Positions 15,535 to 53,982 of a stretch of 64,000 bases of DNA are shown in pieces. Position 1 is the stretch's first letter. Each line of letters starts with the position of its first letter. Origin of the DNA: Botryllus schlosseri (Eukaryota); NCBI GenBank assembly GCA_051294905.1, contig CM119373.1, positions 9,486,001-9,550,000 on the forward strand. Reading direction: 5' to 3'. The translations under genes and the position numbers were made by a program. The notes beneath the pieces were generated by a model that saw only the letters and a list, made by a program, of their open reading frames with translations, had not been told where the DNA came from and did not search any database.

Positions 15535-15646
15535 ATGATGGTGAACGTTATTCATCTCGTAGCAGTGATCCACATAGTTGTGACCGAGGCAGAGTTAGCC
15601 ACGGCAGCGACTGACCATTTGGGTCTGGGTGAAATTGGAGGATCCG
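15535..15646 (+). CDS. Gene B exon 1, signal peptide
   Basis: MMVNVIHLVAVIHIVVTEAELATAATDHLGLGEIGGS then G|gtaaga; hydrophobic N-terminus; phase 1 matches the next exon. Confidence 0.7.
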
Positions 15647-18600
15647 GTAAGAATATATGCTTCACTGAAAGTAAATTTGACGTAATCATACCGTTAACGA
15701 AAATCATGTAGCCTATATTTAGCCGATTCGCCGATTCGATGTTGCGTAGGATCTGAATCAGGTAGCCTATACGCCCATTTCAGGCCGCAACTGCCTATGG
15801 GTAAAAATGTCTCAAACACATCACCCCTTATAGATAGAGAAATCCTATATCCCAGGTGTGCTGCGGATCTGCTCTCATGTAGGTTACCACTCAATAAATT
15901 CCAAAAAAGAATTACACGTAGGCTAAACAGAGCCCACTGCGCCCCTCTAATATTTTCCCATGAGAATTGGTGTATTCTACTCATTTTCACTCTTTGAGAA
16001 GGTGTGAAATCACAATTTGGTACCTGGATTGCCGTTTACCTGATGAACACTTCACGCTGTGGTGGAAATTTGATAAATACACCTAATTTCCACTTACTGG
16101 TTTTACAGTAGTCCTGTAATTTCAGGAGCAGAGCTCAGCCTCTCTGTTTGGGAAGGAATGCCGACTTGGTGGAGACCTTGGGGACCGTGGGGCGCATGTA
16201 GCGGATCCTGCAATATTGGTACGCAAATGCGACGAAGAGCATGCTGGTATGGAATAGATAACCGCAGGTGATATCATCAACATTTACCGCGATAACGCAC
16301 GCTCAAGGGAGTTTCGTGCAGTTCGGGGTCAAGCAGTCCGTCCACGAATGCGCGTCAGGGTGCGACTAACCCATTGGGCGTAGGAACCGGATGTTTTGGA
16401 TTCTTGGCGCAGGTCAAGGTAATGAATGAATTCCATATCACCTGTGTAATTTTTTATCGACCACTCCACTCCAGTGCTTACTTTTAGTGCTGCACTTGGA
16501 AAAACCGATTCGCGCAGATGCTATGTAGATTCGTTATCTGTATGGACAGAAGTATTCATATTTGTAAAATCTATATATATTATAGTATTTGAAGCCAACA
16601 TGGTTATGGCACTGTCAGCATTGTGTGTCCTGGAGTTGAATCAAAACTAGAATCAGCAATGTTAAGAACAGAGCACTGCTCAGAAATTCAAATCTCCATC
16701 CTGTTCTAACAATCGGGACAGCCGACTTTCATCCCTAGAAAATTGGTTATTAAGGTTGACCAGCTCATGAGATCTCGCCTATGTTTCTGACGCGTGTACG
16801 ACACCATCAAACCAATGGTTGGTTGGTTTTAAATAAACATATACATTATTGCCTTATCCTCCCAAGATAATTAAATGACAATATTGCGTTTTGCTTTATC
16901 ATACCAATTGTACATCATGCGGCCCGCAAATGGATTAAGATGTTGAATGCGGCCTGCGAGTTGAAAACTTTTCTCACGCCTGTTTTAGATGATGTAACAC
17001 GACTAAACGCGATTTTATGAGTTCCATGTTTTGGAGAAAAAGCATAGAAGCTATAATTTACGTTGAGAAATATACCTTTTAGTGGAAAGAAAAAAAGTAT
17101 CTCACTGCTAAACATAAATCCTTACAATTGATACTCGATTTGGATCTGAGTACTCGAAACATTGTGCTCAGTCCTAATTACTACATTAGCAGGTTAACCC
17201 AAGTTGATGACGAAGTTCTTCGAGTTTCTCGTAGTACTCAAGCAGGCTTGAACTACTAACAATACTTGCGCAAGTAATAATCGCTATAGACTCCTACCTC
17301 CACTTCTACTTGACCGCTTTTCAGGCAAAACAGCTCAATTTTAGACTTTGGATTTTATGAAGTATACTGTAGTTTGATGTCTGTTTGCAACACCTTTAGA
17401 AGTGAAAGAGTAACACCAATTAAGTAGCCTACATAAGCCCCAGTATTACATCAGTGAAAACATAATGAAAATTAGGCAAAACGTATTTAAATACAAACTG
17501 GACTCGACCATAGCAATGAGCAGTCAGTATTCCAAATCAATCTATAGGTTTAGGTAAGGTTTACATATACTATACCTTACAGGGCTGTTCTTTACCGGCT
17601 TGTGTTGCAACTTCGATACCACGGTCTCCATGGTCAGAATGGTCTGCCTGCAATGCACCGTGCGGGGCTTCTGGTGAACAATTTAGGACACGGCAATGCC
17701 ATGGTCCTGCTGCGGAATGCACGGGAGAAACGTTCCAGAGGAAAGTTTGTCGCACCAGTCCATGTCGTAAGCTATCAATTTTACTTGCATATACTTGGGC
17801 ACATCTGATACGCGATGGTTCAGCAAAGCAAGAGACTATCACGAAAAATCAGGAGACATTTTATGGGGTACTATATTGGCTTTAATATATCATTAGACGA
17901 GGACTGTAACTTACTACACGATTGTTTATTAACTTTTTAAGCGCCCGTACCCTTTGCAATTTTATGAAATTGTTTTCATACTCCTATCTACAATGACCGC
18001 CTGAAGTAGCATAACATAATCTATTTTAATAGGAATCATATAATCAAATCAATCAAATAACTTCGCTCCTACTAGTTTGGTTAGATTTCTTTTGTATCGT
18101 TTTTGTAGAATCCTTAACAATTTCATGGAGTCGACAGTGAAATTTGATATATATTATTTTTTTACTTAATTCAAAAATTCCAATTCTCTCTGCATTTCAA
18201 TTCTCTCTAATCAGTGAATCCCCGGAATCCGAGAGAAAGAATTATTTTTGAACAATCCTAATAATGCGATATAACAAGACTGACATTATAGGACGGTATT
18301 TACTCGGTATATAGAGTCGAATACTTGTTTGCGATAGTCAGAGCAACCAGCAAGGCGCTGTTGGAAGCAACAGGAGTTAAACGCGTCTTTATTTTTAGCA
18401 ACCAATCCTTGTACCGGAGTGTCATGCGCGCAAAACATGGCGTGTAATAATGGTGCTTGCGTATGTCTCCAAGGATTCAAGCCGGCTTCAAGCGGTACAG
18501 GATGCGTTGAACTAGGCCCAGGTGCGAATCGATGGGTTAATATAAAGCCCATTTACATGGTCAAGTCGTCTTGAAGCCAAGTCGTCTTGGAGTGACGTCA

Positions 18601-21600
18601 TGAGACGGCTTGCCAAAGTGATCGAGTTTACATGGTCATGTTTATCGCAGCTCGAGTGATACACAGCACTTCGGGATTCAGCTCGGGAATATGCTACGGC
18701 AGTTGGGATATCCAGAAATACTTCAACACAATTCTAAAATTACCAAATACACCATGTATATATTCTTTCTGATAGTGAGTTGTGCAAGTTATATTGTCGG
18801 CTGTACTCGCTTCATAAGTTGTGACGCTGAACAAATAAGACCACGTGCATATTAGAAAAGCAGTATCATGCATCGATAGAGCTTTCATATTCATCCAGTT
18901 GAAATACGTGCCGGTTTCGTGAAATATGAACATGAAATGTTGGTATGTTGCTGTAGTCTGGATTCGTTTTCAAGTACCGGTAATGTTCAAGCCGTCTCCA
19001 AGCGACTCTGCGGAACGGATTGAGCTCAAGACGGATTGAAGCCGTTTGCCTTTTTCTCTTTTTCAAAAACGAGAGAGTCGGATTGACGAGTCAGCTTCGA
19101 AGCTGACCCAAACGTCCATGTAAATGGGCTTATAGATAGCTATTGAGTTTGCATGTTCACGGCATGTCTGTAGTCACAAATTGCAGTATCAAGAATATAG
19201 TATTAATACTGTCATGATGGCGGAGTTGAAGTCCAATAGCTTGCTAACTTGCCATTCCTTTCAGAATACGTTTGGGGCACATGGTCATCTTCAGGTTGCA
19301 GTCAATCCTGCGGCGGCGGTACCATCACCTTCTCGCGGCCTTGTATGGACGACACTGGCCAAACTATTTCAGAGTCATTTTGCCCAGGCGGATCTTCGAA
19401 AAGTTCTACGTTATTGAGTTGCAATACTATGAGATGCCCACCAGGTAAAATCGATTTGACGTATAAAACTGCCGATATATTGAACAGTTTCTGTGGTGAT
19501 TCGTATAGTCTTTTGTATTCAAGCCATCGTGCATCATGTAATCATTGCTTTTTTAATCATTAGTTTCCAATTCCTCTGTTACTTAAATCGCTACTGTTAC
19601 TGTTACTGTTGTATTTGACGCCGAGATTTAAGTTAGTAAAAGCCAACGAAACAAGAGTCTTCTGTTTACTGGTACGACAATGTTACTAACTTAAATTCTA
19701 TTTCGCTGCTTGGAGAAAGATCGCCTGTAGTAATGTCTGGAGAGAAGTATATTAAAGTTCCAACGTTGGACGTGTTACCAGACTCTGCAGATAGTGTGAA
19801 GATATTCTCTCATTGGGAGCGGGTGTTGAAGAGTTTAATCGAAGCTATAACTGCTCCTTCAACTGATGTAAACAAGCTCGCCATATTGTCAGGTTATTTA
19901 TCACCTGAAGTCTTCTCATTTATTGAAGTAATTGATGATTACGATGCTGCTATCACCGAGCTGCAGTCCCTTTACAAAAAGAAGAAAAACGAAGTCTACG
20001 CCCGACATCTGCTAGCAACTGCAACGCAAGAGGTTGGAGTTGACGTGTCAGAATTTTCTAGAAAACTGATGGCGTTGTCTAAAGATTGTAACTTCTTGGC
20101 CGTAAATGCTCAAAAGCATAAAGAGGAAGCTGTAAGAGACGCTTTCATCACTGGGCTGAGGTCCCCAGCAATTCGACAGAGATTACTGGAATGCGATGAA
20201 CTAACCGGGCAATTCCCTGCACAGACAACCGATGTTCCCACCACTACCTCTTCAAATCTCTTGAAATTTAGTACACGCACAGATGAGCTAATTCCAAACA
20301 GGATGAACTTTATTTCATGAAAATTGGACTTTTGGGTCGAAAGTTACGTCACTTTGAAAATTGACAATTTTCTGCTCAGTGCGGGTCTGCAATTACAGGT
20401 TTTATCAATGCAATATTCAAGAAGGTGTAGCTAGATGTTAGACGACAGTTGAGATACGGCACTTGGATTTATTTGAAGCTTGTCTGATCGTCTATATTTC
20501 CAAGTGAAATTTAATGCCCTTTAGGTTAGGGTCGAAGGTTAAATTGAGGGGGAATTTGGTCAATGGTCTAAAATCAGTCAGGCGTTACACGATTTAGACT
20601 GCGGATTGCTCAAAAACATATTAAAATAATTTGGAAAATAGGATCTTAAATGAAAATTTGCTTCAAGAAGACTTCGTTCATAGCTGTTTGATTTTGGCTT
20701 TTGGACCGTAAAGTGATGAAATTGCAGTTTCAAGAGCACACTTCATTTTCACATGGAAATGCTGTAGTAGTAGTGTGTTTTCGGACATCTATTCTGGGGT
20801 GCGTGTGGACATCATGTCTGGCGTGTGTTAGGACAGTGTTGTCACTCGCTGACATAGTATCTGGGATCTGTTTGTGTTGCGCCAGACATGACTCAGACCT
20901 GATATCTGCGTACTTATTTTATCCGGACATGCTCCGGAGCTGATACCTGCCCACCAAATACCCCCAGACATGGTCCGAACCGGATATATGCGCGCTTAAT
21001 GGTCACAGATATGCGTCAGACGTGATACCCGTGTCCTAAACGACGCGTTTTTGCTGATATCTGCGATAGCTGGGTATAACCACAGTAGTGGTGGCTGAGT
21101 ATATCCACATTCACAGTGGAGATAGCTGAATACATCCAAAGCTATCACTACTGTAGTTATACTCAGCTATCACTGCTGTAGATATACCCAGCTATCGCAG
21201 ATATCAGCAAAAACCGCAAATATAGAGGTCATATATAGACCAAATGTCGTTTAGGACGTGGGTATCACGTCTGACGCATGTATGTGTCCATTAAGCGCGC
21301 AGATATCAGGTCCGGACTATGCCTGGGGGTATTTGGTGCGCAGGTATCAGCTACGACACATGTCCAGATTAAAATAGTGGGCAGGTATCAGGTCTGAGGC
21401 ATGTTTGGCGTATCACAAACATATTCCAGACACGATGTCCGAGTAGCAAACACAGTCTGGACACACCCCAGGCATGATGTCCGAACACCTTCCAGACACG
21501 ATGTCCGAATGACAACACAGTCCGAGCTCACCCCGATACGATGTCCGCGTTGCAAAACAGTCAGAACACACCCGAGCCATAATATCTGCGGTGAGCTCGG

Positions 21601-24600
21601 ACTGTGTTGTCATTCGGACACATACATGCATAACGGACACATACATGCATAATGGACACATACATGCGTCAGACGTGATACCCATGTCCTAAACGACATT
21701 TGGCCTATATATGACCTCTATATTTGCGGTTTTTGCTGATATCTGCTATAGCTGGGTATATCTACAGCAGTGATAGCTGAGTATACCCACAGTAGTGATA
21801 GCTTTGGATGTACTCAGCTATCTCTACTGTGAATGTTAATATACTCAGCTACCACTACTGTGGATATACCCAGCTATCGCAGATATCAGCAAAACCGCGT
21901 CGTTTAGGACGCGGGTATCACGTCTGTCGCATATATGTGTCCATTAAGCGCGCATATATCCGGTTCGGACCATGCCTGGGGTTATTTAGTGGGCAGGTAT
22001 CAGCTCCGGAGCATGTCCGGATAAAATTAGTGCACAGATATCAGGTCTGAGTCATGTCTGGCGCAACACAAACATATCCCAGATACTTTGTCAGAGTGAC
22101 ATCACAGTCCTAACACACGCCCGGCATGGTGTCTGAACACCCCCCTCATACACGATGTCCGAGGGACAAAACAGTCCGAACTCGCCCCAGACACGATGTT
22201 CGAATGGCAACACAGTCCTAACAGACCCAAGACGTGATGTCGGAACACACCCCAGACATGATGTCCACACGCACCCCAGAATAGATGTCCGAAAACACCC
22301 TACTACTACAGCATTTCCATGTGAAAATGAAGTGTGCTCTAGAAACTGCAATTTCATCACTTTACGGTCTAAAAGCCAAAATCAAACAGCTATGAACGAA
22401 GTCTTCTTGAAGCAAACTTTCATTTAAGATCCTATTTTCCAAAATATTTTAATATGTTTTTGAGCAATCCGCAGTCTAAATCGTGTAACGCCTGACTGAT
22501 TTTAGACCATTGACGAAATTCACCCTCAATTTAACCTTTGACCCTAACCTACAGAGCATTAAATTTCACTAGAAAATATAGACGATCAGACAAGCTTCAA
22601 ATAAATCCAAGTGCCGTATCTCAACTGTCGTCTATCATCTAGCTCCACCTTCTTGAATATTGCATTGATAAAACCTGAAAGTGCAGACTCGAAATGAGCA
22701 GAAAATTGTCAATTTCCAAAGTGACGTAACTTTTGACCCCAAAGTCCAATTTTCATGACATAAAGTTCATCCTGTTTGGAATTAGCTCATCTGTGCGTGT
22801 ACCAAATTTAACAAGATTTGAAGAGGTAGTGGTGGGAGCATCGGTTGTCTGTGCAGGGAATTGCCCGCAAAAAGCCTTCCAGACTGCGGACACGTTAGAA
22901 AGAGCCCAATTGTTCGCCAGCTCGTACAATGTCAACCCCCCTTCGTCTGATACCATCGCTTCTGCGGAAATCGCCGCAGTTCGGAAAAGCGATCCTGAAC
23001 ACGGAACAGATTTTACTGCGGCTGTAGAAAAGCCCGGAGCACCGAGATTACTGCGCAAATGCCTCTTCTGCGGCGGATCTCATGTGGCAGACAAGCGCGT
23101 TTGTCCTGCAAAGGACGTCGAATGCCTGAAATGCGGAAGAAAGGGGCATTTTGCAAAGGTATGTCGATCCCCTCGTTCATATGACATCCGAGCAACCGCC
23201 AGCATGCTTCTAGCAGGAGTTCCAAATTGTCTCTGGCGTGCCTCATGCACAGCTAAAATTCATAAATTACTTGTGGGCGTTCTATTAGACTCGGGCTCTT
23301 TCGAAAATTATATGGACGAGTCGGTAGCCATTAAACTAGGATTTTTGCCACGAGGTCAGTCCACTACTATATCACTCGCGTCCAAGACAGCGACGGCCGA
23401 AGTTTCCGGCACATTTACTGTTTCTTTCGAAATGCTATCTCGAAACTATGTGGGTGTCACATTCGGGGTGGTTAAGGATTTGTGCGCTGATGTAATTCTT
23501 GGTCATGATTTCATGAAGAAGCACAAGAAAGTCATTTTCGAGTTTGACGGAAACGAAGAACCGCTGACAATACAAAGTCGATCGTGCGCTTTGTCCCCTG
23601 CTAAGGCAGAGCCTCTTCAGCTATTTCGGTTCCTAGATTCCAATTGCAAGCCTATCGTCACCCCATCAAGAAATTATAGTCGCGAAGATCAATCGTTCAT
23701 CAAGGACGAAGTTAATCGCTTACTCGAAGGAGGAATAATTGAGCCTTCTCGTTCTCCTTGGCGTGCTCAAGTATTGGTTACGAAGGTTTCCAGGCACAAG
23801 AAAAGACTTGTCATTGATTATTCGCAAACCGTAAACAGGTATACTCCGCTTGACGCGTATCCCTTGCCAAAAATTGAAACTATCGTAAATGAAGTGTCGA
23901 AAGGTAAAGTATATTCGACTATTGATTTGAAGTCTGCTTATCACCAAGTCCCGCTATCTTCATCTGACAAGCCGTTTACCGCTTTTGAAGCTTGCGGCTC
24001 CCTTTATCAGTTTTGCAGATTGCCTTTCGGTATCACCAATGGAGTGGCTGCTTTCCAACGTTTTATCGATTCGTTCATCGACGACTACAGTTTGAAAGGG
24101 ACTCTGGCTTACTTGGACAACATCACTATATTCGGCAAAGATGCCGCGGAACACGACGAGAGACTTCAAGCTTTCCTCAAAGCCGCATCCGATTGTCGAC
24201 TAACGTTGAACGAGAACAAATCCGTCTATAACGTGAGTGAATTGCGTCTATTGGGTCATCTGGTGTCGCACGGATCCATTAAACCCGACCCAGATCATCT
24301 GAAACCATTGATTGAGTTGCCACCCCCTAAATCGGATAGAGAGATGAAAAGGATCTTGGGTATGTTCGCATATTATTCAAAGTGGATTCCATGCTTTTCT
24401 GATAAAATCAAACCAATGCTTAGCAATTCAGTTTTTCCACTGACTGGGCCTGCCCTGACCTCATTCAATGTTCTGAAGGAAGACTTGATAAACGCCTCCC
24501 TTTGTTGTATTGACGAATCTGAACCGTTTGAAATTGAATGTGATGCGTCCAACAACGCTATTGCTGCTATTCTCAGTCAGCGAGGTAGACCTGTGGCATT

Positions 24601-36600: not shown

Positions 36601-39600
36601 TCACGAGTCAAGTCACAATTCAAGTCAAATTGAATTTTCGACGTATGAGTGATGATTCAAAGTCAATACATTTTGCTAGCTGTGTGAAAGACGGAATAAT
36701 TAATCATTTATCCTAATCAAATAACGAATATCTAGTTAATTATACATGCAAAAAGACGGCGTATCCTTCACGCACGCGTATAACTGCTAATAAAGTACGC
36801 GAGAAACTGTACAGCTACATACTACAGTTAGTTCTTATCAGCCAAAATATAGGACCTAATACGAAGCTTCGAGAAGTTGAAACAAATTGATATGGTACAA
36901 TACCCTACACTACCCATCTACACATCCGTGAGAATATTATAGCACACAATATATTCGTTCGATTTAAATCATACAAGAGGATTGGTGAATATGAGCACTG
37001 GGCAACGTAAGCATTGACTCGTCTAAGAAACAGAGACACATTGTTATTTAGATTAATTTTATACTTTGCGGTCCATGTATTTGTGATCTAACAATTGAGG
37101 AACCTTGTAACGTACAATCAGTGAATGACTGGTTGTTCTCACAAGTGACACCGGCGTATCTCGAACAATCCGAACATACACAAGAGACAGCGATTTATTC
37201 GACACCGCTTACTTAATGACTTGAAATTGACTCGTAAAGTTTGCTCAGAGTCACGATTCAATGCACATTTTTAAAGCTCCGACTCAAGTCAAGTCAAGTC
37301 ATACGAAAAAGTTGACTCGAGTCTAACTTGAGTCAAGTCATGACTCAAGTCATCCCAACACTGGTAGGTAGTCACATTACAAGGGGTCAACTTTTGATGG
37401 AATCATCAGAGCACAGACGACAACATGTGTGTTCGTTTGGATGCTTCTGGCTTTCGCTTGAGAGCACTTGTTCGCACGTTGTGCAAGGTCCATGCTTTGA
37501 CCACGTATTGTTTTAAAGTTTTGCAATTCATACAGGAGATCAAAAAAACAAATCTTGGCTCAGGAGTATTCTGCGGTGGAGCTCTCATCACTACGAGACA
37601 TGTGATCACAGCAGCCCACTGCTTCCAAAGTAGGTGATGTCAGTTGAATTTTCTATTTACTAAGATGTAGATAGCTTGACTCAGGACGCAGTTTAAATAA
37701 CTTCAATTAGATAGCATGCAGTCATACTTATCAACCCCGTCGTGCTACAGTATACAACACAATACCATCGGTGATTCTGTTCTTTTCATTCGCGCAAGAC
37801 TGAATGTCCAATATGTGATAAACGGCTCACAATGCGATATACTGAACAGATAGAAAGTTATTGAAAGGATTATGACTGGCCAACCATTCTAACATCAACA
37901 TTATGGGCCACATATATGTGTTCGGTATACCACAAACTTTCAAGAGTATACTTATGTCTTTCGACATGCGGAGATTATTCATTGGTACGTTCCACAGCTG
38001 TAACAGCGATGTGTTGCGAGTTCGAGTCCGACTGATGTTGACCCTAGAATCCCCAACTAAGTCGGAGGTTTATCCAGGCTCGTCATCCTTATGTCATAAA
38101 CGCTTGCGCCTGTAGTCGGGTTTGACTCTTAGCTTTTTGTAAAAACAGTCCCGTAAAACCATTGTGACGCACACATAAAGTAGACCAGTGGTTCTCAACC
38201 TTTTTTGCTTCGCGGACCCCCTTTTGACCGTCACGGACCCTCGCGGACCCCCTCAAGTTTTAGTTCAATTTTAGCTCTATTATGGTGCAAACTTCATCTG
38301 TCTTGTGCAAATATGAACTGTAAGGCTTGTGATAGACAGCAAAATAACAATTTTTCTTGAAGATAACATCATACTATTTATGTAGAAATTGGCGGACTTC
38401 TATTATTTCAAAGCTAATTCTGCTGCTGTATTACTTGAAGTACGTGGTCGTGTATTGAAAATTCGCGTCTTCGTTTTGATATGAACGAGGAGTGCCGAAA
38501 ACCATTTCCGCAAAGATAGATGGAAGCTAATGCAATATTAACGCATAACGCTTACGGCGATACTTTTGGTGTGATTGCAACATTTATGGCAGCAAAATGA
38601 AGAAACAAATATTTTATGAACATATCACGTCCAGCATCTAGTGCAGGGACGGGCAACATACGGACCGCGGGCCGGATTCGGCCCGCAGAGAGTTTCTACC
38701 GTAAAAGTGAAATCCTAATCTAAAAGTCTAAACAAATTTTATGCTCCAAAGAATGGATCCACGTTTTCCAACCAGAGAAAGACTGTCATGAAACGACTTG
38801 TTCTGTTCGGGTTTACATATATATTCACGAGCAAACATTTTCGACCATGAACAACTGAACATTAACAAGACAAGGCTGCATACTAATATAACTGGTGATA
38901 TGACTTTCAGGGTTGGAGCGTAATGCTTTGATAGCAACGAAACATTCCTTGTTCATACAAAATCAGCCTTGTCGATAGGGCATCCGCAATAAGAATGCAC
39001 CAAATCTGATAGCCGAGCTTTAACAGCAGGTATATCATTGTCCGATTTATGACGAGTGTCAGCCGAAAATATTCGGGTCCATTTCAATATGAATACATTA
39101 TTCAATTGTATATTAAAGTTCCGTACCTCCAAGAAGCTGTTCCTTGCATTGGGACAAATTATGGAAATACTTCCGAAATTTTTATTTCAAACGGCTGTTC
39201 ACTAATTTGATGAGACTGACAACGTCAAATCGAGAAGGTTTCACAGACATTACGATTTTTTCTACAAACCGCAACAAAACGTCTCTAAACAGAAATATGT
39301 TTGTGTCAGCAGGTTATTGGAAAATTGGCAATGAAAATGAGTTTCCATACTACGATAGTCCATGTCAGACGATTATTATGATGATATGAGTCATGAGGTT
39401 TTAGCAGTTGTGGTGCGAAACTGCCTCAAGCTTTCTCAAATTAAAACATAAAATAAAAATTAGGTTATCAACTATTTAAAAAAATTAGAGGTCTCGCGGA
39501 CCCCCTTGAAATTGCTTCGCGGACCCCTAGGGGGACCCCTAGGTTGAGAGCCGCTGAAGTAGACCATGAACTTTCTAATACGACACCATGCGGAAACATA

Positions 39601-42600
39601 CGTTCTAAACTTCTCTAAACCAATAAAAATGATAGGATTTACTTCTCCAATTAAAAGACAAGCGTCCAAATATTTTCATTGTGGAAATGAGATATAAAAT
39701 TCTAACATATTTCTGGACCGGCAGGCACCTTTCCACGGACCGGCACTTGAGAAGCACCCTTATAAGCCCCTCTAAGGGTTGAAACAACTGTTGCATTGTG
39801 CCTTCTATCCAATGCAACACGTAGAGTCGTAGACAAACGCATTTGCGGTGGCGTGAGCGACTCGGTAAACATATCTGATTATTTGTTTGTATTGTGATAT
39901 TTATGGGGATTTGCGACTACAATGGTCATTTATACGAGGCCCATATTCTGTATTGGGATTCCATATCTGCCGATTTGTGACACGAACTAGATTTTTATAA
40001 GACACGGCCCGACTCCAACCCGTAACCTATTGATTGGTGTTACAGCTGTGGATCATACCACCACGCTATCTCGCCACTTTGGACTGAGGTCAACATTTTG
40101 TCACAATTAAGGTTTTTAAAGTCTAAAAATGTCAAAATTTCGATTTTTTAAGTCAAAGTCTTCCGTTCGTTAGGTTAAAAAATCGCCTACTTATCATGAA
40201 TTCAAACCGATTTTGTGGGGAGACCGGGGACAATTGTAACACTTTTTGTATTTTCCAACATTACGCGTTTTTCTCGTGGAAATTTCACTTCCAAAGTTTT
40301 ATATAAAGAAGCTAACAACTCGATAGTTGATACAAAAACTAAATTGGAACTCAATCAATTCTGGGTCGCAAAAATCGCTGCTCAAATGTTACAATCGCCC
40401 CGTACCCAGGGGCAATTGTACCACCTTTGCGGGGCAATTGTAACAGTGTTATTTATAACTAAACACAAACGAAATGAACAACGAAAACGGAAGCACAAAT
40501 TGTAATATTGCATGAAACTAAAGCAAGAGACGTTTGAACGCTTCCAGGCTACGCCCCATCGCATTTATGGCATCTGAATGCAATATCATCCTTCGTGTCT
40601 TGTTCAAGCTTAAAGTGTACAAGAGGCACATTCATTTCATCATCTCCCTACACATATTCGGCCTCTTCTACCAAGGTTCTGTTGTTCAACGTGCATAATG
40701 GGTTGATCATTCGGTCACCTGCGAAGGTGCGAAACCGACCTGGCTAACATATCTTGGTTGAATGGGCCGATGATAGTATAGCAAAACGAGGAGGCAACAT
40801 TGTGTGGCGTAAAAGCTATAATGGTATTCTTCTGTGCTGTACAAAATTAAAATAAATTGTTCACATCAAATATCAAAATGTAAGTGGGCCATGATCAAAG
40901 TCAGAGGACGAGAATTCAGTCATGACCATTGCAGTTCGACACACCAAAAGTCGATCAACATGAGAAAGGGTGGTTGAATCACGAAAATAACCTAACCGTC
41001 AGATTCACATCACCACTATTGTATGGCCGTTTCGACAGATGATCATGTTAGAATTGGTATCGCAAGGTAGTATCTGTTCTGGTGAACTTCTGGCTGTTGC
41101 GAGATTATTCTGCAGTAGATGAATGGTAATACCAACATATGAACAAAGACATTCAGAATTGATAACATATTGTAACGGGGCAAAAGTAACAGAGTGTTAC
41201 GATTGCCCCTGACACGCTCGACCGCATGATTAGTGTCTCAGTATAGTACCTTCCCGGCGATGCAAGTCCTATTCTTTTCATCATCACGGTAGACTATAGT
41301 AACATTGTTCCAGCTACAAATATTACGTTGTAACTACTGGAGGTACTATTCGTCTAGACAAATTATACCAGACCAGAAAAACTTTACTCAAGGGTCAAAA
41401 ATTTCGTTTTTTGCAAATTATTCCGGGGTTTCGCATCGTAGCTCAACGTAACTCCAGGTATAATAGGAGAGATAACTACTGCATGCGCACTTAAAATATC
41501 AAGCTGATTTCTCCATCCTACTAGCGGTGAGGTCGATTGTTACATTTGCCCCTAGTTAGATTTGTCCCCGGTCTCCCCTACTACAAAGGTTAGCACATTT
41601 TCACTATAAAGTCACATTGCAGTAACGATTTTCTACGTGTCTCGCTCATTGGCGATAGTACTCAACACAATGACTTAGAAGGCAATTCAACAAATATTAC
41701 ATACATATTCAAATTAAAAGTATCGCGCTGATGCCGTCGCGACGTAAAATTATACCCTTCGCGACCCTTGTTTGGGTCGCCACCCATACTTTGAGAGCCC
41801 CTCCTATATATGTGTTACTTCATTGGTACTGAGACACCATACTGGCGTCAGAGTTTACAGTCCAGTAACATAGAGATCTTATCTATGTATCAACTATTCT
41901 TGACCGTTGTCACCAAGTCGCACCAAAAGAGCTGATGCATATCTGCTTCCGTAGGTATCTCACCAAAGGAAACAGCGGTATACGTGGGAAAGTATGTGGC
42001 GGATGTCGGTGAAAGAGAAAGGATGCAGCAGTCATCTATTGCCAAAAGCGTGTTCGTGCATCCAGATTACATTCCGGAGACCCTGCATGCTGACTATGCG
42101 ATACTTACCATCGAAAACGAATTTTATTTTTCTTCATTTGTAAAGGTGTGAACACTGAACATGAGATTTCCGTCGTTTGTAACTACTAGGCCCTGCAACT
42201 GTTATGGTCAGCTCGCTTCGAATCACTTTTACCAATTGTTAATGCGTGGCAGACAACCCATGGTGCGTGACTGAGTAGCATGCCAAGTAAACCAGTCCTA
42301 TCTAGATACATATTAAGCGCAGATTTTGACCCGACTCAAATTGTGATACCCGAAAATGTTGAAATCCTTGTCATTGTTCATTAAGGCTTGATTGAGTTGT
42401 TGTTATGTTATTGCTAATGGCGATTCAACTACATCGGTCATTTTACACCGGGGATGTATCCTGTATCATTATTCCATAACGGAAAACTTTTAGCACTACC
42501 CATGCACTTTCTTATTAGGATTTCGTAAGACACTGCGTATGCGGATCTCATGAAGATGAGGAGCCCATACACCCCCGCAATCTATAGGCTAATATATACC

Positions 42601-45600
42601 AGTGTTGGGATCAAGTCACTGCCTTCGAGTCACAAGTCATCTCGACTCAATTCACAAGTTGACTCGAGTCAAGTCAATAGATTTTCGAAGGTGACTCGAG
42701 TCAACTCAAGTCTTTCAAATTATGCAGGGTCATAGTTATCAGCCAAAATACAGTATGGAATACCAAACCGCAAATAGGTGAAAAAATTGATACAATGCAA
42801 TACACTAGGCATCACCAACACATTCATGATATACCATTTAGACCTGCTATATGGTTCATGAGTAATATAAACGTATAAAAATATTCGTTCGATTTAAATC
42901 ATACAAGAGTGTTATATGAAACTCGGCAGTGGGAGAAGTTTATAAATAAGAGATACTTTGCTATTAGATTAATGTACGACTAGTTTACGACGACGTAAGC
43001 TGTAAGACAGTGGTTCTCAACCTTTTTGCCTTCGCGGACCACTTTTGGACCACCACGGACCCCTACGGTTCCCTCAAGTTTTCGTTTAAAATTAGTTCAA
43101 TTATCGAGCTACCGCCACCTGTCTCATGCAAATATTGATAGTAGGCTAGTGATTAACAGCCACAAAAGGACTTTTCTTGCCCGACCGAGATCGACTCCAG
43201 AATTCCTACTTAAGTGCTGATGGTTATCTAAGGCTAAGCTCCTCCTCGCCATCCAACCCACGTAGGCGGTGTCTCACAGAAAGCCTAGACGTGTCTCGGG
43301 CTATAAATCGGTAGATTAGGAATAAAAATAAGGAATATCGGACAGGTGTAAATGACCATAGTAGTCCACAAACACCATGATACCACAAACAAAAAACAAC
43401 TTTTTTGAAGATAACATCACACCAGATTTAGAAATTGGGTAGACTTTCATTCTTTCTAAAAGAATTTTGCAGCTGCATTCATTTTCTTGAAAATCCGCGT
43501 CTTCGGTTGGATATGAACGGGGGTCGAAAATCCATTTCTACAAAGATATAATGGTGGCGAATGTAATAGGCTATTAACGGGTAACGCTTCGGACGACAGA
43601 TTTTGGTGTGAGTTTTTAATGAACATATCTCGTCCAGCCTAGTCATTTTCATCTAGCATCTAATCCTGAAGTTATTTAGTGGTTATACAACAAGAGAAAA
43701 TGGATTTCGTGGCGTGGTTTCAATTAGTTCTTTGGGACTCCAAATCCAAAATACTATCTTCAACATTTCATTTTTCCTCGAACCCTAAAATCGTCTCCAA
43801 ACATGAACATGTTTTGCATCGGCAGGCTATTGGTAATTTGACAATTAAAATGAGTTTGCACAGTCGAATATGTCATCTCAGACGACCATTTCAATGATGT
43901 GAGTCCTAAAGTTTTAGCGAATATGAAGCGAAACTGTCGCATGCTTTTCCTAATTATAAAAAAACATCATAAAAATTAAGTTTTCAGGCACTTCACAAAT
44001 GTAGAGGCTTCGCGGACCCTCTGAAAATGCTTCGCGGACCCCCGGTTGAGAACCACTGCTGTAAGATGATCACTGCGTTTGCGGTCTTTAATTATGACAT
44101 AACAATGGCGGCTCAGTGAAACACAAAATAATTGAGCGATTGGTTGCATGCTCTCAGAAATCACATCAGCGTATCGTTACAATCCAAACTTATACAAGAT
44201 ACAGCAATTTAGCCGACAACGATTACTTGGTGACTTGAAATTGGCTCATAAGTTTTGCTTGGAGTCACGAGTTAATCCACAATTCTGAAACGTCGAGTTA
44301 AGTCAAGTCAAGTGATTTCTGCAAAGTGACTCGAGTCAAGTCATGTCATACCAACAATTTGACTCGAGTCTGACGTGAGTCAAGTCATGACTCGAGTCAT
44401 CTCATCACTGATATATCCTGCCGTCGACCTCGAAGACGGAACCAGCTTGTGCACCATACCACTACCAAACTCGTCCCTATAGTTCCGTTGTCAAATTGGT
44501 CGTTTCTTTTCTCTTCAAGAGATTCTTTTATTCATTACAAAATTGATACTTCAACTGTCAATGCTTACCGCAAAATATGTTGTAAGAGAGATAAAAATAA
44601 AACCAACTTGAATATTTCAACTATTCCCGTTACTTTGGTCAGTTAGTCGTCTTTGTGAAAGAATGATGTAAGAGAGAAATGTTAGGTAATTCAGTACAAT
44701 AGTTATCACCATAATTAGTTGCATGCAAATATATTTTTCAACGTCTAGTCACAAACCATGGAGGATTGAGAAACCGTGATCCTCACAATGCGCCTATCTA
44801 TAAAGCGGGTATCATATAGGGATGGTGTGAACCTCTGAAAGGTTCTGGTTCGTGTGAACGCGAACCTTTTTGAAAGGTTCTGTGTGAACACGAACGTGAA
44901 CCTCATGACGTCACGTGACGTCATATTACTAATTCCAACCCTATCTTTCAATGAAGTGATAGCCTATATTAATGTACAGTTGTACACGATACATAGCGAC
45001 GACTCGGGCCACATCATTCCACAATGCCGAAGTATGTTGGCGTTTTAAACGTCGCTAAATGTATCAATCAATCAATCAATCAGGTTTATTAATATTTTCA
45101 TCGTTTCAAAACATCACAAGACTGCGATACAATGAAAAGATAGGAAGGTGTCGAAACAACTTGGAGTAGCCTTTGAGATCAGACACCCACCTCAGCCTAG
45201 GCGAAGTAAAGAAGAGGCATGCACACTGAATGAAAAGTAATGCAGAGAATATAAGACGCAAGCGACAAAATGGGGTGGCATGTGGCGGAGGGCGAGGTCG
45301 ATGTTAGGTCGTGGTCCGGTAATCCTGAAGACTGGCTAGTATTGATTTAGAAGAAATTGCTTGTATTTCGACTTGAATGCGGACATGCTCGACGACTGTC
45401 GGATAGTCGGCGAGATGCTGTTCCACAATTGGGGTCCGGCATACTCGATAGAGCAATGCGTTTTCTTGTATTCAGTCCTGATCATATGGTAGTTGTTCTT
45501 CGTTGACGCGCGTGTGCTGTACTTGTGCGCTTTTATCTCCGAGGTGAAGTAGTCCTTGAAATCTGAGGGACATTGACCGCAATGGAACTGATACATAAAC

Positions 45601-46710
45601 TTGGCAATTTCTAGCTTCCTCATATCTTCTAAGTTTAGAACACCAAATCTTTTGAGAAGCGATTTATCAGTTGCACAACTGAGGCAATCAAAGAATATGA
45701 TACTCCTATAAAATCAATGTCTTCCGTCGCTTTGCCAACAATTTCGATGAGGAGTTACCAGGGAATATAAGCTTACGCCTTAACGGTCTAGGCCAGACCG
45801 GATAATGTATTCGGCGTCTGAGTATCGCTACATTGATATTAGGCTGAGTGTAAAACGGGTTTCTATACTTGCTACCGATATTACCCCATTAACAAGTTAT
45901 ACCGCAGTAGCCAACACCTCAATCACAAAGGTTTGGTTTTAATGATGCAGTAAAGATATGAAGTCAAGATTGACCCCGTACGCCTGCTTGATTTTTTTGC
46001 ATCAGAAAACGATATCAATCTCATTGATTGGTTGAATAAGCATCATTCGCTGACTATGTATTTCGCTCAAGACGTTGTGTGATTGCGGGTCAAACTCACA
46101 GCAGAGAGTCACTAAATATTCATAAACGGAAAGCTGGATATTTCGAGCAAACTTTTGTAACAAAGCAAGTAAAACTTTCGAGATTGTCAAGGTGCATGCT
46201 CGTTTAGTGTTGATTTTTAATGCTGCCAGCGCCATGCATAGAGTGGCCCGCAGTTGAAATGCAATAATTTTCAACCAAAGATGTTATAATGAAGTGAAAA
46301 TTGTAATATATGAAAAAGGTTCACAGTGCAGAACCTACCAAGGTTCTGTTGTGAACGCGAACCTCTAAATTTCCGAGGTTCACACACAGAACGCAAACGT
46401 GAACCTCACGTTCACACCATCCCTAGATGATTCGGCCCGGCTCAACCGAATGCTATTTGCATTTGAGGAATAATCGGCGCATCACTAATATCTTTACTTC
46501 ACATCGATTAACTTTGCGGCAAATCAAATAGTTTTTAGGCGTTTTCTATTACAAACATATATTTTATTCTTTTAGCCGATATGCATTGCTAAACCTGATA
46601 ATCGCAACGACGAAATTACGCCAGACTCTCCTCCTGGGAAGACAAAGTATGGCGTTGTCTACGGCTGGGGTATCACGAATAACGGCTTTGGAGCCGATCA
46701 GCTGCGTGAC
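15535..46710 (+). CDS. Gene B: secreted modular serine protease SP-TSP1-TSP1-EGF-TSP1-vWA-EGF-Ig-trypsin (3' exons not in window)
   Basis: 14 exons with compatible phases, 2319 nt = 773 codons with no stop: 15535-15646, 16126-16246, 16322-16418, 17583-17766, 18399-18521, 19265-19444, 26876-27454, 30269-30365, 30551-30692, 33273-33429, 35980-36086, 37536-37629, 41955-42145, 46576-46710. Confidence 0.88.
16126..16418 (+). CDS. Gene B exons 2-3, first TSP1 repeat (short intron 16247-16321, exact sites uncertain)
   Basis: WRPWGPWGACSGSCNIGTQMRRRAC ... GVGTGCFGFLAQVK|gtaatg, continued by GCSLPAC in the next exon. Confidence 0.8.
17583..17766 (+). CDS. Gene B exon, second TSP1 repeat
   Basis: ttacag|GGC...TGT C|gtaagc; SPWSEWSACNAPCGASGEQFRTRQCHGPAAECTGETFQRKVCRTSPC. 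Confidence 0.92.
18399..18521 (+). CDS. Gene B exon, EGF-like domain 1
   Basis: ttttag|CA...CCA G|gtgcga; NPCTGVSCAQNMACNNGACVCLQGFKPASSGTGC (6 Cys). Confidence 0.88.
18545..19131. mobile_element. PIF/Harbinger-like MITE, 587 bp
   Basis: TIR AAGCCCATTTACATGG; 3-bp TSD ATA (18542-18544, 19132-19134). Confidence 0.75.
19265..19444 (+). CDS. Gene B exon, third TSP1 repeat
   Basis: tttcag|AA...CCA G|gtaaaa; YVWGTWSSSGCSQSCGGGTITFSRPCMDD...FCPGG...SCNTMRCPP. Confidence 0.92.
19492..19679 (+). repeat. 5' LTR
   Basis: TGTGGTGATT...GGTACGACA; identical by eye to 26106-26293. Confidence 0.96.
19683..19696 (+). promoter_or_regulatory. Candidate self-priming primer-binding site
   Basis: TTACTAACTTAAAT is the exact reverse complement of LTR bases 19626-19639; no TGG-initiated tRNA PBS follows the LTR. 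Confidence 0.7.
19733..20207 (+). pseudogene. gag: gag N-terminal part (interrupted by the foldback element)
   Basis: MSGEKYIK...VRDAFITGLRSPAIRQRLLECDELT; the tail of the track ORF runs into the inserted TIR. Confidence 0.9.
20208..22865. mobile_element. Non-autonomous foldback DNA element, 2658 bp, nested in gag
   Basis: Ends GGCAATTCCCTGCACAGACAACCGATG are inverted; arms stay reverse-complementary for about 1.1 kb; modular internal repeats; central 31-bp perfect hairpin; no transposase ORF. Confidence 0.9.
22866..24641 (+). pseudogene. pol: gag C-terminus (CCHC knuckles), protease, RT and start of RNase H
   Basis: CLFCGGSH...CPA...CLKCGRKGHFAKVC; LLDSGS; IDLKSAYHQ; LPFG; YLDN; ECDASN (track ORF 22733..24673). 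Confidence 0.93.
24642..24696 (+). mobile_element. 55-bp 5'-truncated non-LTR retro-insert with poly(A) tail
   Basis: AGTCGAGCATG...TTCAGAAG followed by an A-run, flanked by 12-bp TSD TAAATTATCCTG (24630-24641, 24697-24708). Confidence 0.85.
24709..26051 (+). pseudogene. pol: RNase H C-terminus and integrase
   Basis: AVEKEAAAIMHAI*KWRYLLHGRKFRLITDQK (TGA at 24747-24749); integrase LHNILGYPG, CGSCRQC, DFKGP, VDEYSRF, SDRGSSF, GNSQCER; no chromodomain. Confidence 0.93.
26094..26104 (+). other. Polypurine tract
   Basis: GGTGGGGGAGA just before the 3' LTR. Confidence 0.85.
26106..26293 (+). repeat. 3' LTR
   Basis: Same sequence as the 5' LTR. Confidence 0.96.
26876..27454 (+). CDS. Gene B exon, von Willebrand factor A domain
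   Basis: ttcag|TG...GAA G|gtaatt; LDLVFLIDGSASI (DxSxS), VIVQYS, LITVTDG, LAIGVG. Confidence 0.94.
27515..27658. other. Assembly gap (144 N)
   Basis: Run of n. Confidence 1.
30269..30365 (+). CDS. Gene B exon, EGF-like domain 2
   Basis: gatacag|CA...TAC GG|gtgaga; SPCSSSPCRNDGRCIVIEQNTDYSCECPTGYG (last Cys in the next exon). Confidence 0.92.
30551..30692 (+). CDS. Gene B exon, end of EGF and first half of Ig domain
   Basis: tttag|T GAT...CGG|gtatgt; DKDCSK...IHLKCVFPEAIKSQVTWRHNKLEVDR. Confidence 0.88.
31941..33054. mobile_element. Non-autonomous hAT (Buster-type) element, 1114 bp; same family as 38186-39556 and 43008-44058
   Basis: TIR CAGTGGTTCTC; TSD GTCTACAA; GGGTCCGCG subterminal motifs; duplicated left end near 32133. 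Confidence 0.92.
33273..33429 (+). CDS. Gene B exon, second half of Ig domain
   Basis: tttcag|ACT...TCA G|gtaagc; QLTIERPRFTNSGEFSCQITDEGVERHATLLV. Confidence 0.9.
35980..36086 (+). CDS. Gene B exon, zymogen activation segment
   Basis: tttacag|CT...AAG|gttcgt; CGESPGLSKRMINAKIKDGQITKLGEAPFVAMLHK; phases 1 and 0 link the Ig and His exons. Confidence 0.85.
36488..37363. mobile_element. hAT (Ac-type) MITE, 876 bp, with GACTCGAGTCAAGTCA subterminal repeats
   Basis: TIR CAGTGTTGGGAT; TSD GTAGGTAG; related copy at 42600-44410 and a right-end fragment near 26600-26695. Confidence 0.92.
37536..37629 (+). CDS. Gene B exon, His57 motif
   Basis: atacag|GAG...CAA A|gtaggt; EIKKTNLGSGVFCGGALITTRHVITAAHCFQ; 94 nt as in gene A. 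Confidence 0.94.
38186..39556. mobile_element. Non-autonomous hAT (Buster-type) element with nested fragments, 1371 bp
   Basis: CAGTGGTTCTCAACC ... GGTTGAGAGCCGCTG; TSD AAGTAGAC. Confidence 0.88.
39846..40077 (-). mobile_element. Possible tRNA-derived SINE
   Basis: Minus strand has A-box-like TAGCGTGGTGG and B-box-like GGGTTGGAGTC 36 nt apart; 3' boundary is approximate. Confidence 0.4.
40215..41581. mobile_element. Non-autonomous TIR element, about 1.37 kb, superfamily unresolved
   Basis: Inverted GGGGAGACCGGGGACAA at both ends; GGGGCAA...GTAAC subterminal motifs; TSD not clear. Confidence 0.75.
41955..42145 (+). CDS. Gene B exon, Asp102 motif
   Basis: ccgtag|GT...AAG|gtgtga; ISPKETAVYVGKY...VHPDYIPETLHADYAILTIENEFYFSSFVK; 191 nt as in gene A. 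Confidence 0.94.
42600..44410. mobile_element. hAT MITE (36488 family) hosting a nested Buster-type element
   Basis: CAGTGTTGGGAT ... CTCATCACTG; TSD ATATATAC/ATATATCC. Confidence 0.82.
43008..44058. mobile_element. Non-autonomous hAT (Buster-type) element, 1051 bp, nested
   Basis: TIR CAGTGGTTCTCAACC; TSD CTGTAAGA. Confidence 0.92.
44817..46425. mobile_element. hAT-like element hosting a LINE fragment; partial related copy near 27830-28290
   Basis: TIR TAGGGATGGTGTGAAC; GTGAAC subterminal repeats; flanking 8-mers do not match, so no TSD support. Confidence 0.7.
45063..45700 (-). mobile_element. 5'-truncated CR1/L2-type LINE (ORF2 C-terminus, 3' UTR, (GATT)n tail)
   Basis: Track ORF 45336..45623 ends SIEYAGPQLWNSISPTIRQSSSMSAFKSKYKQFLL, a typical CR1/L2 ORF2 end; tail ATCAATCAATCA on the + strand. 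Confidence 0.85.
46576..46710 (+). CDS. Gene B exon, PICI...GWG (last exon found)
   Basis: ttttag|CCG...GAC|gtatgt; PICIAKPDNRNDEITPDSPPGKTKYGVVYGWGITNNGFGADQLRD. Confidence 0.94.
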
Positions 46711-48682
46711 GTATGTTATAATTTACTGTTCCTTCGTTTTGAGTTAAATCAATGCATCGTGGCTTATTTCTGCGCACTCCCCCCCTTATACGAACGTTTT
46801 TTTCATCGTCATTTCGCTTAATCGCCAATCCACTTTGGCGTTCTGTCATGATGATGACGGGATTTTTAATTACCTAATCATGTCACCGTGACTTGATACT
46901 AAAATTATGGCGGGGAGTAAGTTTAGATCAGCGCAAACACAGATTGCAGTGTTACAATTTCAATCCGCAAGTGTAAGAGAAACAAGCGGTATCAAAAGAT
47001 GCAATACGCTATGGGCATGCATATATTGAAAATCTGCTAGTACTTCACGGGTATTTGCCACCGATTAGTAATGTTGTTTACTACTCTGGCATTGTCCTGG
47101 ACGTCGATCTGCCATAACGGAGCCCCCCGCCATTTCAAGAAAACCATGAATGGAATTCCGTCATGTCGCCTGTATAGGCAGCGCGCAGTATCCTACGTCT
47201 TCGATATATTGTGATTCTATTACATGTCGGTAAATGTCTAATTGTGATTGAGGATATATTTGATATCATCATTTAGGTGTTTATATATGTATTGTCATTT
47301 GTAAGTTACATGTTGATGTGATTTAAACAAGAATAGCTAAATCAATGAATCTGTATATTTAAAAGCTCACTGTTCTGACGAATATCGGTAAATGCGGATA
47401 TTCGACCTATTTTTGAAACAGGCTCGCCTGGTGTAGACTATTGCGTCTGAAAAGTACTGTTCACTGTAAAAAATAATGATGGGTGTACCCATTGTCTAGA
47501 CCTGGTCCCACCTGAGTCATGTCGACATGGAAAATGTCCATGACAACTTGTCGACATCCATGTAGACCTGTTGACATCCATGTTCCTACCCATGTCCTAA
47601 TAATGATTAAAATTGACCTTTCACCTCGACCAATGTAAACATAATCTGTGGTTAGATGTATTTGGCTGTATTTGACATCTGGAATGTTTGCAAGAAAATC
47701 TGCGACAAAGTTCCATGAACTTGCTGACGGTGGCGCAAACTTGATATTCAAACCCCAATATGACGCCAATGCATATGATGGAAACACATTATTCCAGCGA
47801 CAGATTCCCCATCGAAAAGGATTGTCCACTTTTTCTGAAGAGTATCGAACTTCATCGTCGGGCAGACATTCTTCGGATCCTATATTGAATATGAACGTCA
47901 TTACCATTCATGCAATATTCAATAAGGCACACGAGTTGATAGAATATATATCAATAGTCTCCAAGGTAGTTTAAAGTTGTATTCATCACAGCCAGTTAAG
48001 ATGACAAAAATCAATTTGCACCTCATTACATTAATTGACCTAGTCTACGAATTGGCTCGGTATATCCAAAATCTACTTCTTGACAATATCAAGTATGCAC
48101 CGTATTTCATTCCTTTACCTATGCATCACTATACTATTTGATGCTACGATTATCCAATTTTTATTAAATGCATGAACTAATCCAAGGACTGGCAGTACAT
48201 CCAGGATTTGAATGCTCGTATGTTGGTGGCGGAGTTCAACATTGGTGATTGCGACCCGGCCAAAGGTTGTTTGTATATTTTCTGGGAATTCCGAAAACAG
48301 AATACTCACTTTTTGAAATCCGCAAGTAAAATTAAACTAGGACTAATCAATCACCTTCTAGAATTCAAAACTAGAATTGAAACTAAAACTACTCAATTTC
48401 CAAAAACCACAAATATAACTATAACTTATTTACAACTATATCTAAAACTTTTAAAAATTCGATAGAACCAGTACTAACAACCTATTAAAATCAGGAACTT
48501 ACAAACTAAATCACAACTAACAATATCAGTGGTTTTTGACTGTTTTTCCCCGAAAGCAATGGCGCATGACACTAAACTCACATGGTTTGTAGTAGGGCTG
48601 GGCAAAATGATTCGAGCACTCGAATCTGATGTGAGTAGAGTATTATTATTATTATTGTAGTATTGTCGTGGGGTATTATTAG

Positions 48683-49196
48683 TAGGGCTGGGCAGTGAGC
48701 ATAATGATTCGATTACTCGAATCTGAATCGAGTAATAATTTTAATGATTCGAGTCGAGTAGTAAAAGACCATTTTTTCGAGTACTAAAATTATACACGCT
48801 TCTCGCTACTCAAAGTTATTTTATCAACTAGAATTGTGGTTTCGATACTATTTTCCATTGTGGAAGCCGTGAAACTTTGATTGACCTATCGGAGCATACG
48901 AAACATATAGTACAAAGCTACGACCGTTACAGGAAAAACATTTCCGAAGTCATGATCCTCCCCCAACATTGCAAGAAAATGCAATGAAATCGGTAGGGTC
49001 GAAAAATACCCAAGTATTTTTAATGGGATAGATAAGGCATTACATTCGCTGTGGTGGGACAAAATGTACATATTTTAACTTTGACATATTAGATTTTGTT
49101 GTGACGTCAAAATTAGTGATACTCGAATACTCGACTCGAAGCATAATACGTGATTCAGAATCGAATCGCTCAGGCACTCGATTTTGCCCAGCCCTA
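48683..49196. mobile_element. hAT (Ac-type) MITE, 514 bp; extra left-end fragment at 48593
   Basis: TIR TAGGGCTGGGCA; TSD ATTATTAG; ACTCGA/TTCGA subterminal repeats. Confidence 0.9.
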
Positions 49197-53851: not shown

Positions 53852-53982
53852 CTGCGCAGGACTGTCAGCACTAGCGGCATAACTGATCTCGGGAACACAT
53901 AAATCACAGCTTTATATGGCTCTTATTGAATATAATACGAAAAAACTTCCAAAACAATAAATTTTCATGTCAGCTTAAAAAC

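Follow-up and report, generated by a model that had tools for sequence, protein, structure and literature searches.

The combination of a vWA domain with a serine protease is known from complement factor B/C2, and properdin and C6–C9 contain TSP1 repeats. To our knowledge, factor B/C2 is the sole well-known family in which one secreted chain carries both a vWA domain and an S1 protease. Here we analysed a 64,000-nt window of the Botryllus schlosseri genome (the window being the whole stretch of DNA studied; ~40% G+C, with one 144-N run only), in which positions 15535–46710 hold the exons of a modular S1 protease, hereafter copy 2, downstream of the 3′ half of a paralogous gene, copy 1. The two copies belong to a real and unusual family of mosaic S1 proteases, in which common modules are newly combined on an ordinary S1 protease and whose architecture is undescribed as far as searched. 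The region 15535–46710 probably represents the first 14 exons of a mosaic S1A protease gene that is intact or was so until recently.

Mosaic S1A zymogens such as plasma kallikrein/factor XI, enteropeptidase and neurotrypsin resemble the locus in their N-terminal binding modules, encoded by phase-1 exons, in a linker Cys that pairs with Cys122 and in an activation cleavage site before an N-terminal Ile. Copy 1 further shares with them the catalytic triad, the Asp189 pocket, the histidine-loop disulfide and a TCN codon for the catalytic Ser. A canonical activation site, the histidine loop and the TCN Ser codon set an S1 protease that has them apart from the Bf/C2 and MASP-2/C1r/C1s lineages. Unlike these zymogens, the locus combines three TSP1 repeats, two EGF modules, a collagen-type vWA domain and an Ig domain in a set and order that neither the proteins retrieved nor the literature searched contained; copy 2 also reads IKDG rather than IVGG after the activation site and is without a Ser exon in the window. 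The ADAMTS proteases and the tunicate TSP1 astacins ('Tast') follow the same design principle, with TSP1 repeats as the anchor that holds a secreted protease to its substrates in the matrix or egg coat. They differ from copy 2 in being zinc metalloproteases rather than serine proteases, and in ADAMTS the TSP1 repeats lie C-terminal to the catalytic domain.

Exon structure of copy 2 and its upstream paralogue

The copy 2 model was built from stop-free segments in all frames, GT/AG site scores and frame bookkeeping. Fourteen plus-strand exons with a total length of 2319 nt join into a single frame of 773 codons with 0 stops, and all 13 introns are of the GT–AG type. The same splice model had been proposed in the initial annotation, and our independent rebuild gave identical numbers. 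Each exon was translated singly and matched to Pfam and PDB, and nine of them independently matched an expected extracellular family in Pfam. The per-exon matches agree with the module order first proposed for the locus, i.e. TSP1, TSP1, EGF, TSP1, vWA, EGF, Ig and trypsin (S1A), with TSP1 repeat 1 half-verified and the trypsin domain represented by its first ~60%. By reading, the Cys pattern is complete in all modules. TSP1 repeats 2 and 3 cover the full profiles and show the WxxW motif, the Arg layer and six Cys, and exon 4 is flanked by the acceptor CCTTACAG/G and the donor GTAAGC. The Ig core is split between exon 9 (LKC...W) and exon 10 (NSGEFSC), as expected of an I-set domain; the PDB matches of exon 10 all belong to the Ig superfamily (titin, IgG Fc, VEGFR2 and NCAM, the best at 5e-5).

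The intron phases of copy 2 are, in order, 1, 2, 0, 1, 1, 1, 1, 2, 0, 1, 0, 1, 0. They had been described as mostly phase 1, which holds as a majority, but of just 7 of the 13 introns (54%). Six of these seven lie at module boundaries (signal/TSP1, TSP1/EGF, EGF/TSP1, TSP1/vWA, vWA/EGF and Ig/protease), and the seventh (37629/41955) falls within the protease domain. The module exons of symmetric phase 1-1 are consistent with assembly by exon shuffling. As controls, 10 intronic open reading frames (ORFs) were searched against Pfam and none contained an extracellular module. Motif screens revealed no further TSP1, EGF, CCP, LDLa or CUB modules, intron screens for CCP, LDLa, CUB and SRCR by regular expression (regex) and Pfam returned nothing, and an Rfam scan of the 64-kb window gave no match.

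The catalytic His57 is present in both copies within TAAHC, together with the upstream His-loop Cys (FCGGAL) and the Cys42–Cys58 loop. Asp102 lies in ADYAIL in copy 2 and in ADFAIL in copy 1. The Asp102 exon had marginal PDB matches only, and an ORF-level search with it gave no candidate sharing enough 5-residue words. Aligned by eye to the pattern IVGG...PW...L, exon 11 reads ...CGES...NAK followed by IKDG...PF..ML, and exon 14 supplies PIC; by pattern reading, these segments correspond to a zymogen-activation site and to the Cys partner of the linker.

Copy 1 (444–9250) comprises five GT–AG exons encoding 238 residues, the 3′ half of a gene on the same strand as copy 2. Its His/Asp/Ser triad is complete (TAAHC, ADFAIL, GDSGGP), and Asp189 and the Cys168–182 and Cys191–220 pairs are present; Ser195 (in GDSGGP) and the C-terminal beta-barrel come from the Ser exon and the last exon, which lie within 1.7 and 4.2 kb of their preceding exons. 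In the PDB, the catalytic exon is closest to plasma kallikrein, FXI, trypsin and thrombin, a generic resemblance. The two copies are arranged head-to-tail, 6.3 kb apart, and are 62% identical over 141 residues with the same intron positions. The His and Asp exons are each 64% identical between the copies, and the Asp exon 73% at the DNA level. When the copies were aligned as DNA, two shared exons only were recovered (73–75%), and the introns were unalignable. The ratio of nonsynonymous to synonymous divergence (dN/dS) is 0.16, with dS ~1.7 (Nei–Gojobori, 139 codons). The copies are thus an old duplication under purifying selection. A tandem array had been suggested for the locus; a diverged paralogue does lie upstream on the same strand, but the array amounts to two copies only, and the window edge runs through one of these. 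The features of both copies and of the intervening elements are listed in Table 1.

Table 1. Exons of copies 1 and 2 and two intronic features of copy 2 (window positions; values after family names are from Pfam matches; a slash marks the exon–intron border)
Feature	Positions	Strand	Description
Copy 1 His exon	444–537	+	94 nt, same as copy 2; Trypsin 1.6e-6
Copy 1 Asp102 exon	1401–1591	+	ADFAIL; 191 nt, same as copy 2
Copy 1 Cys122–GWG exon	2856–2993	+	138 nt vs 135 nt in copy 2
Copy 1 catalytic Ser exon	4711–4853	+	GDSGGP, Ser codon TCC, Asp189; Trypsin 6.4e-10
Copy 1 last exon	9100–9250	+	Stop at 9248–9250; AATAAA at 9320
Copy 2 exon 1	15535–15646	+	ATG and hydrophobic signal-peptide-like stretch; phase-1 donor CCG/GTAAGA; no Pfam match
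Copy 2 exon 2	16126–16267	+	N-terminal half of TSP1 repeat 1 (WxxW, CSGSC, RRR layer); TSP_1 7.6e-6, profile 2-24/49
Copy 2 exon 3	16337–16412	+	Putative middle of TSP1 repeat 1; phase 2-to-0 bridge by enumeration
Copy 2 exon 4	17583–17766	+	Last two Cys of TSP1 repeat 1 and whole TSP1 repeat 2; TSP_1 2.2e-10, profile 1-49/49
Copy 2 exon 5	18399–18521	+	Six-Cys EGF-like module, phase 1-1; EGF Cys pattern; weak Pfam matches EB, cEGF, EGF_Teneurin
Copy 2 exon 6	19265–19444	+	TSP1 repeat 3, phase 1-1; TSP1_ADAMTS 3e-5, profile 2-55/55
Ty3/Gypsy-type long terminal repeat (LTR) retrotransposon	19492–26293	+	Intron 6, sense; 188-bp LTRs 100% identical, TG...CA ends
Copy 2 exon 7	26876–27454	+	Whole vWA domain, phase 1-1; VWA 8.5e-24, profile 1-171/174; donor AAG/GTAATT
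Assembly gap, 144 N	27515–27658		Intron 7, starts 60 nt past exon 7 donor
Copy 2 exon 8	30269–30365	+	EGF module 2, first five Cys; EGF 1.1e-7; donor CGG/GTGAGA, phase 2
Copy 2 exon 9	30551–30692	+	Last Cys of EGF 2 and first half of Ig (LKC...W); frame and phase fit; no Pfam match alone
Copy 2 exon 10	33273–33429	+	Second half of Ig (I-set-like); I-set 1.8e-3, profile 44-90/90, below Pfam cut-off
Copy 2 exon 11	35980–36086	+	Linker Cys, putative activation site (Lys then IKDG), protease start; no Pfam match alone
Copy 2 exon 12	37536–37629	+	Histidine loop, catalytic His (TAAHC); Trypsin 9.1e-7
Copy 2 exon 13	41955–42145	+	Catalytic Asp region (ADYAIL); Trypsin 6.4e-5, profile 47-105
Copy 2 exon 14	46576–46710	+	Cys122 (PIC) to GWG strand; ends at donor GAC/GTATGT, no stop; last exon found

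The missing 3′ end and the probable unity of the gene

Several observations weigh against copy 2 being the 5′ part of an intact protease gene. No stop codon closes the 773-codon frame, which runs up to a splice donor; the protease domain includes His57, Asp102 and Cys122 and breaks off behind the GWG strand. Exons for the catalytic Ser195 and the C terminus were not found on either strand of 46711–64000 (17.3 kb) by a permissive tblastn search with the copy 1 exons and a motif regex. In the vWA domain, the DxSxS (DGSAS) of the metal ion-dependent adhesion site (MIDAS) and the Asp of the TDG motif (TVTDG) are kept; the MIDAS Thr motif is replaced by GEHAY (27180–27200) vs GT.TY in eight of nine aligned relatives, and the metal site of copy 2 may, from this alignment, be altered. 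A young LTR retrotransposon sits in sense orientation 48 nt after the exon 6 donor. Exon 3 is the weakest exon of the model: it has no Pfam match and was placed by frame and splice signals, and its edges are ambiguous (acceptor 16322 or 16337, donor 16412 or 16418, the frame being unchanged in all combinations). TSP1 repeat 1 is only half-verified because it depends on this exon. Copy 1 is known from its 3′ half only, the N-terminal half lying outside the window, and no orthologue with the architecture of copy 2 was found with single exons or domains as queries. Finally, the copy 2 model is a prediction from genomic sequence. The protease assignment made in the initial annotation stands for the start of a trypsin domain with its His and Asp; that the window holds neither a catalytic Ser exon nor a stop for copy 2 had been overlooked.

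Some of these observations would also be expected if copy 2 were a truncated or decaying duplicate, i.e. a pseudogene or a non-catalytic, protease-like adhesion protein that lost its 3′ end by transposon-mediated rearrangement, with copy 1 as the enzymatic member. The Ser195 and last exons, so close by in copy 1, are missing from copy 2, the MIDAS Thr motif is lost, the activation sequence IKDG is unusual, an element with identical LTRs has landed next to a donor, and no polyadenylation signal lies near exon 14, the nearest AATAAA being ~900 nt away. However, neither stops nor frameshifts occur in any of the 14 exons, their splice sites are canonical and every structural Cys is kept. The donor after exon 14 occupies the same codon position as its copy 1 counterpart. 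The dN/dS value speaks for long-term constraint, though it cannot date a recent loss. The missing exons either lie past 64000, beyond a transposon-swollen intron of >17 kb, or have been lost. Such an intron is not absurd, because copy 2 introns are generally three to five times as long as those of copy 1 and are filled with repeats. We regard truncation as a doubtful explanation, and an intact or recently intact gene as the probable one.

It might also be asked whether the model has merged two or more neighbouring genes, namely a TSP1/EGF/vWA matrix protein and an Ig-protease or protease-only gene. Protease-free proteins with TSP1 repeats and vWA domains do exist: two of the 150 best vWA matches (P0083, P0085) have TSP1 repeats. 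These coadhesin/hemicentin-like matrix proteins resemble copy 2 in combining TSP1 repeats and vWA in secreted adhesive proteins, and differ from it in having several vWA copies and no Ig-protease tail. The parts of copy 2 are separated by introns of 2.5–7.4 kb, and its exon junctions are read from the DNA rather than from transcripts. On the other hand, no second signal-peptide-like start exon of compatible phase was found at 15.7–47 kb; within 9300–47000, the ATG at 15535 is the only start to come with both a hydrophobic 10-mer and a good donor of phase 1. Because the exons for EGF 2, Ig and the activation peptide have no Met and a starting phase of 1 or 2, they cannot open a secreted protein. 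Neither the vWA exon nor the Ig exons are followed by a stop or a terminal exon, and the junction phases all match. The largest separation is also recent: intron 6 (7.4 kb) measured ~0.6 kb until recently, because most of it is the 6.8-kb LTR retrotransposon. A merger of genes is accordingly given a slim chance, and a single transcription unit would be the economical reading of 15535–46710.

One other position, 30248, matched the start screen and was rejected; it is out of frame over the EGF 2 exon and misfits the phase of the next exon.

The only assembly gap lies in intron 7, which spans 2.8 kb from the end of exon 7 (27454) to the start of exon 8 (30269). Both flanking exon ends are phase 1, EGF 2 begins at its first Cys and both flanking domains are complete, so that the frame of copy 2 is independent of the gap and of its true length. 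An extra symmetric exon may be hidden within the 144 N.

The vWA domain and the complement question

The vWA exon was searched exhaustively with HMMER against 1.84 billion representative proteins. No match exceeded 45% identity, and multi-vWA collagens dominated. The best single-domain matches were ORFs on unannotated contigs with 36–45% identity, along with a fragment of collagen helix plus vWA; the top one (P0116, 45%) lies on a 1.6-kb Logan contig. Named relatives are a Ciona 'matrilin-1-like' protein (collagen-vWA-Kunitz-vWA), the nearest of them, and, from a stepping-stone search, a Styela 'collagen alpha-1(XXVIII)-like' protein. The stepping-stone search with the Ciona collagen-like vWA, made within a length window of 382–1214 aa, recovered collagen XXVIII/VI-like proteins only, none of them with a protease, and a trypsin domain was present in none of the 150 best vWA matches. 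The best 60 PDB matches comprise collagen VI chains, mussel PTMP1, integrin I domains and VWF A domains. Judged from these matches, the vWA domain is of the collagen VI/XXVIII–matrilin type. Exon 7 is 32–45% identical to the vWA domains of collagen XXVIII, collagen VI and matrilins and has the motifs DGSxSI, VQ[YF]S and KILIT.TDG in common with them. None of these relatives, which are collagens and matrix oligomers, has a protease, and copy 2 also differs in its replaced Thr motif.

The closest vWA ORFs on long contigs were found on two contigs from the European Nucleotide Archive (ENA), L001 (2.8 Mb) and L002 (1.4 Mb), and were rejected as orthologues, since their flanks contain further vWA exons and no TSP1, Ig or protease exons. 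Both are metagenome-assembly contigs on which eukaryote-style split vWA genes have been given prokaryote-style ORF calls; they are evidently host or other eukaryote DNA within metagenome assemblies.

The initial annotation had not recognised the domain order, and no match for it emerged from the protein searches by single exon or domain or from the literature, in which we found no description of a protein combining TSP1, vWA, Ig and trypsin. Coming from searches by single exon or domain, the absence of a matching architecture is suggestive at most.

The initial annotation had also offered a complement-like role, and copy 2 could in principle be a divergent member of factor B/C2 (or MASP), a protease of the C3-convertase type. 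What speaks for this is that a vWA domain and an S1 protease share one secreted chain, as in factor B/C2 (CCP-CCP-CCP-vWA-serine protease), and that TSP1 repeats recur in other complement components. Bf/C2 proteins are defined as CCP(1-7)-VWA-Tryp_SPc (PMC11312191). In copy 2, no exon had a Sushi match, so that CCPs are missing N-terminal to the vWA domain; together with the negative intron screens, this agrees with the earlier statement that the gene has no CCP modules. The vWA domain does not directly precede the protease, as EGF and Ig exons intervene, and factor B or C2 was not found among the best 60 PDB matches of this collagen/matrilin-type domain. Nor does the order CUB-EGF-CUB-CCP-CCP of MASP/C1r/C1s apply, no CUB or CCP having been found in the exons; LDLa modules are likewise absent from exons and introns. 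The protease features are canonical, i.e. the activation site and the histidine-loop disulfide and, in copy 1, a TCC Ser codon. The complement-like reading is thus not borne out, and membership of the factor B/C2 family is very improbable. Copy 2 may instead be functionally analogous to Bf/C2, with a metal-dependent ligand-binding domain that would steer a protease, without being a member of that family.

A single regex match at 27869–28063 was considered as a CCP candidate and discarded, as it had no Pfam support.

That open segments line up by chance in the copy 2 frame, and that there is no gene at all, has a negligible probability: the exons were chosen by eye from stop-free segments and exons 1, 3, 9 and 11 have no Pfam match alone, but nine exons match expected families independently, the control ORFs are negative, and a paralogue with exactly the same intron positions, but introns that cannot be aligned, reveals an old duplication under purifying selection, which rules out chance ORFs.

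Transposon-filled introns and proposed function

The gene had been described as hidden among transposons, and transposons do fill the introns of copy 2, in the form of the LTR element and dispersed repeats. In the Ty3/Gypsy-type element, long gag-pol ORFs (647 and 433 aa) encode zf-CCHC, aspartyl protease, RVT_1, RNase H and rve domains. The best named matches of its pol region are from Styela clava (49–52%) and Ciona intestinalis (57% over 63% coverage), just above cnidarian and mollusc matches. Its insertion looks very recent, and it might be polymorphic or affect splicing. Within the element, a 630-bp segment occurs twice in inverted orientation (20206–20835 vs 22238–22867, 95% identity), flanked by further short inverted and tandem repeats at 20.8–22.3 kb, which points to an internal rearrangement, palindromic in form, of the gag-proximal part.

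Downstream of exon 14, a dispersed direct repeat of ~400 bp (53453–53855 vs 61596–62025) shows 89% identity. Because of this repeat and other repeat pairs (31–45 kb), the introns and 3′ flank of copy 2 are considered largely transposon-derived. An unclassified repeat family is present at 45339–45713 (minus strand), 52793–53269 (plus strand) and 63226–63512, with 78–79% DNA identity. In the first two copies a C-terminal ORF is conserved (LLKRFGVLN...KAHKY.TRAS...), for which Pfam gave no match, and the family probably represents 3′ ends of a non-LTR element. At 60070–61226 (minus strand), overlapping ORFs of 218 and 234 aa lie in different frames, one with a weak match to DUF4218 (transposase-associated), and the segment looks like a frameshifted DNA-transposon remnant. 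Tandem repeats were located at 6787–6897 (50-bp unit, 2.2 copies), 53231–53350 (46-bp unit, 2.6 copies) and 62388–62741 (116-bp unit, 3.1 copies, 92% matches); the last is open in one frame and is merely repeat sequence.

From the exon structure and motifs we infer how the protein might work if the exons are joined in one transcript. Copy 2 would be a secreted zymogen with a signal peptide, three TSP1 repeats, the last two separated by an EGF module, a vWA domain, a further EGF module, an Ig domain and the protease. The N-terminal TSP1/EGF/vWA/Ig modules would dock the enzyme on glycans or on ligands of the matrix or cell surface. An upstream trypsin-like enzyme would cut after the Lys that precedes IKDG, and the freed N-terminal Ile would then insert, allowing the active site to form. 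The disulfide between the linker Cys and Cys122 would hold the catalytic chain tethered, and Asp189, seen in copy 1, would confer specificity for Arg/Lys.

If transcribed as modelled, copy 2 would represent a second, independent coupling of a vWA domain to an S1 protease in animals. It would also provide a clean case of exon shuffling, with module exons of symmetric phase 1-1 and a vWA domain traceable to a collagen-type donor. New module combinations are frequent in invertebrate deuterostome genomes, which tempers the surprise. A bolder proposal, to which we give an outside chance, is that the copies represent an undescribed, lineage-restricted (probably tunicate) family of vWA mosaic proteases independent of factor B/C2, in which exon shuffling joined a vWA exon of collagen-XXVIII type, and exons for TSP1, EGF and Ig, to a trypsin-type protease. 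If true, this would be a convergent 'ligand-gated' protease that could serve clotting or opsonisation as part of a humoral cascade, or remodelling of the tunic or matrix. Such proteases in invertebrate chordates would be candidates for haemolymph cascades and for matrix or tunic processing, and would bear on how the proteases of vertebrate complement and coagulation were assembled.

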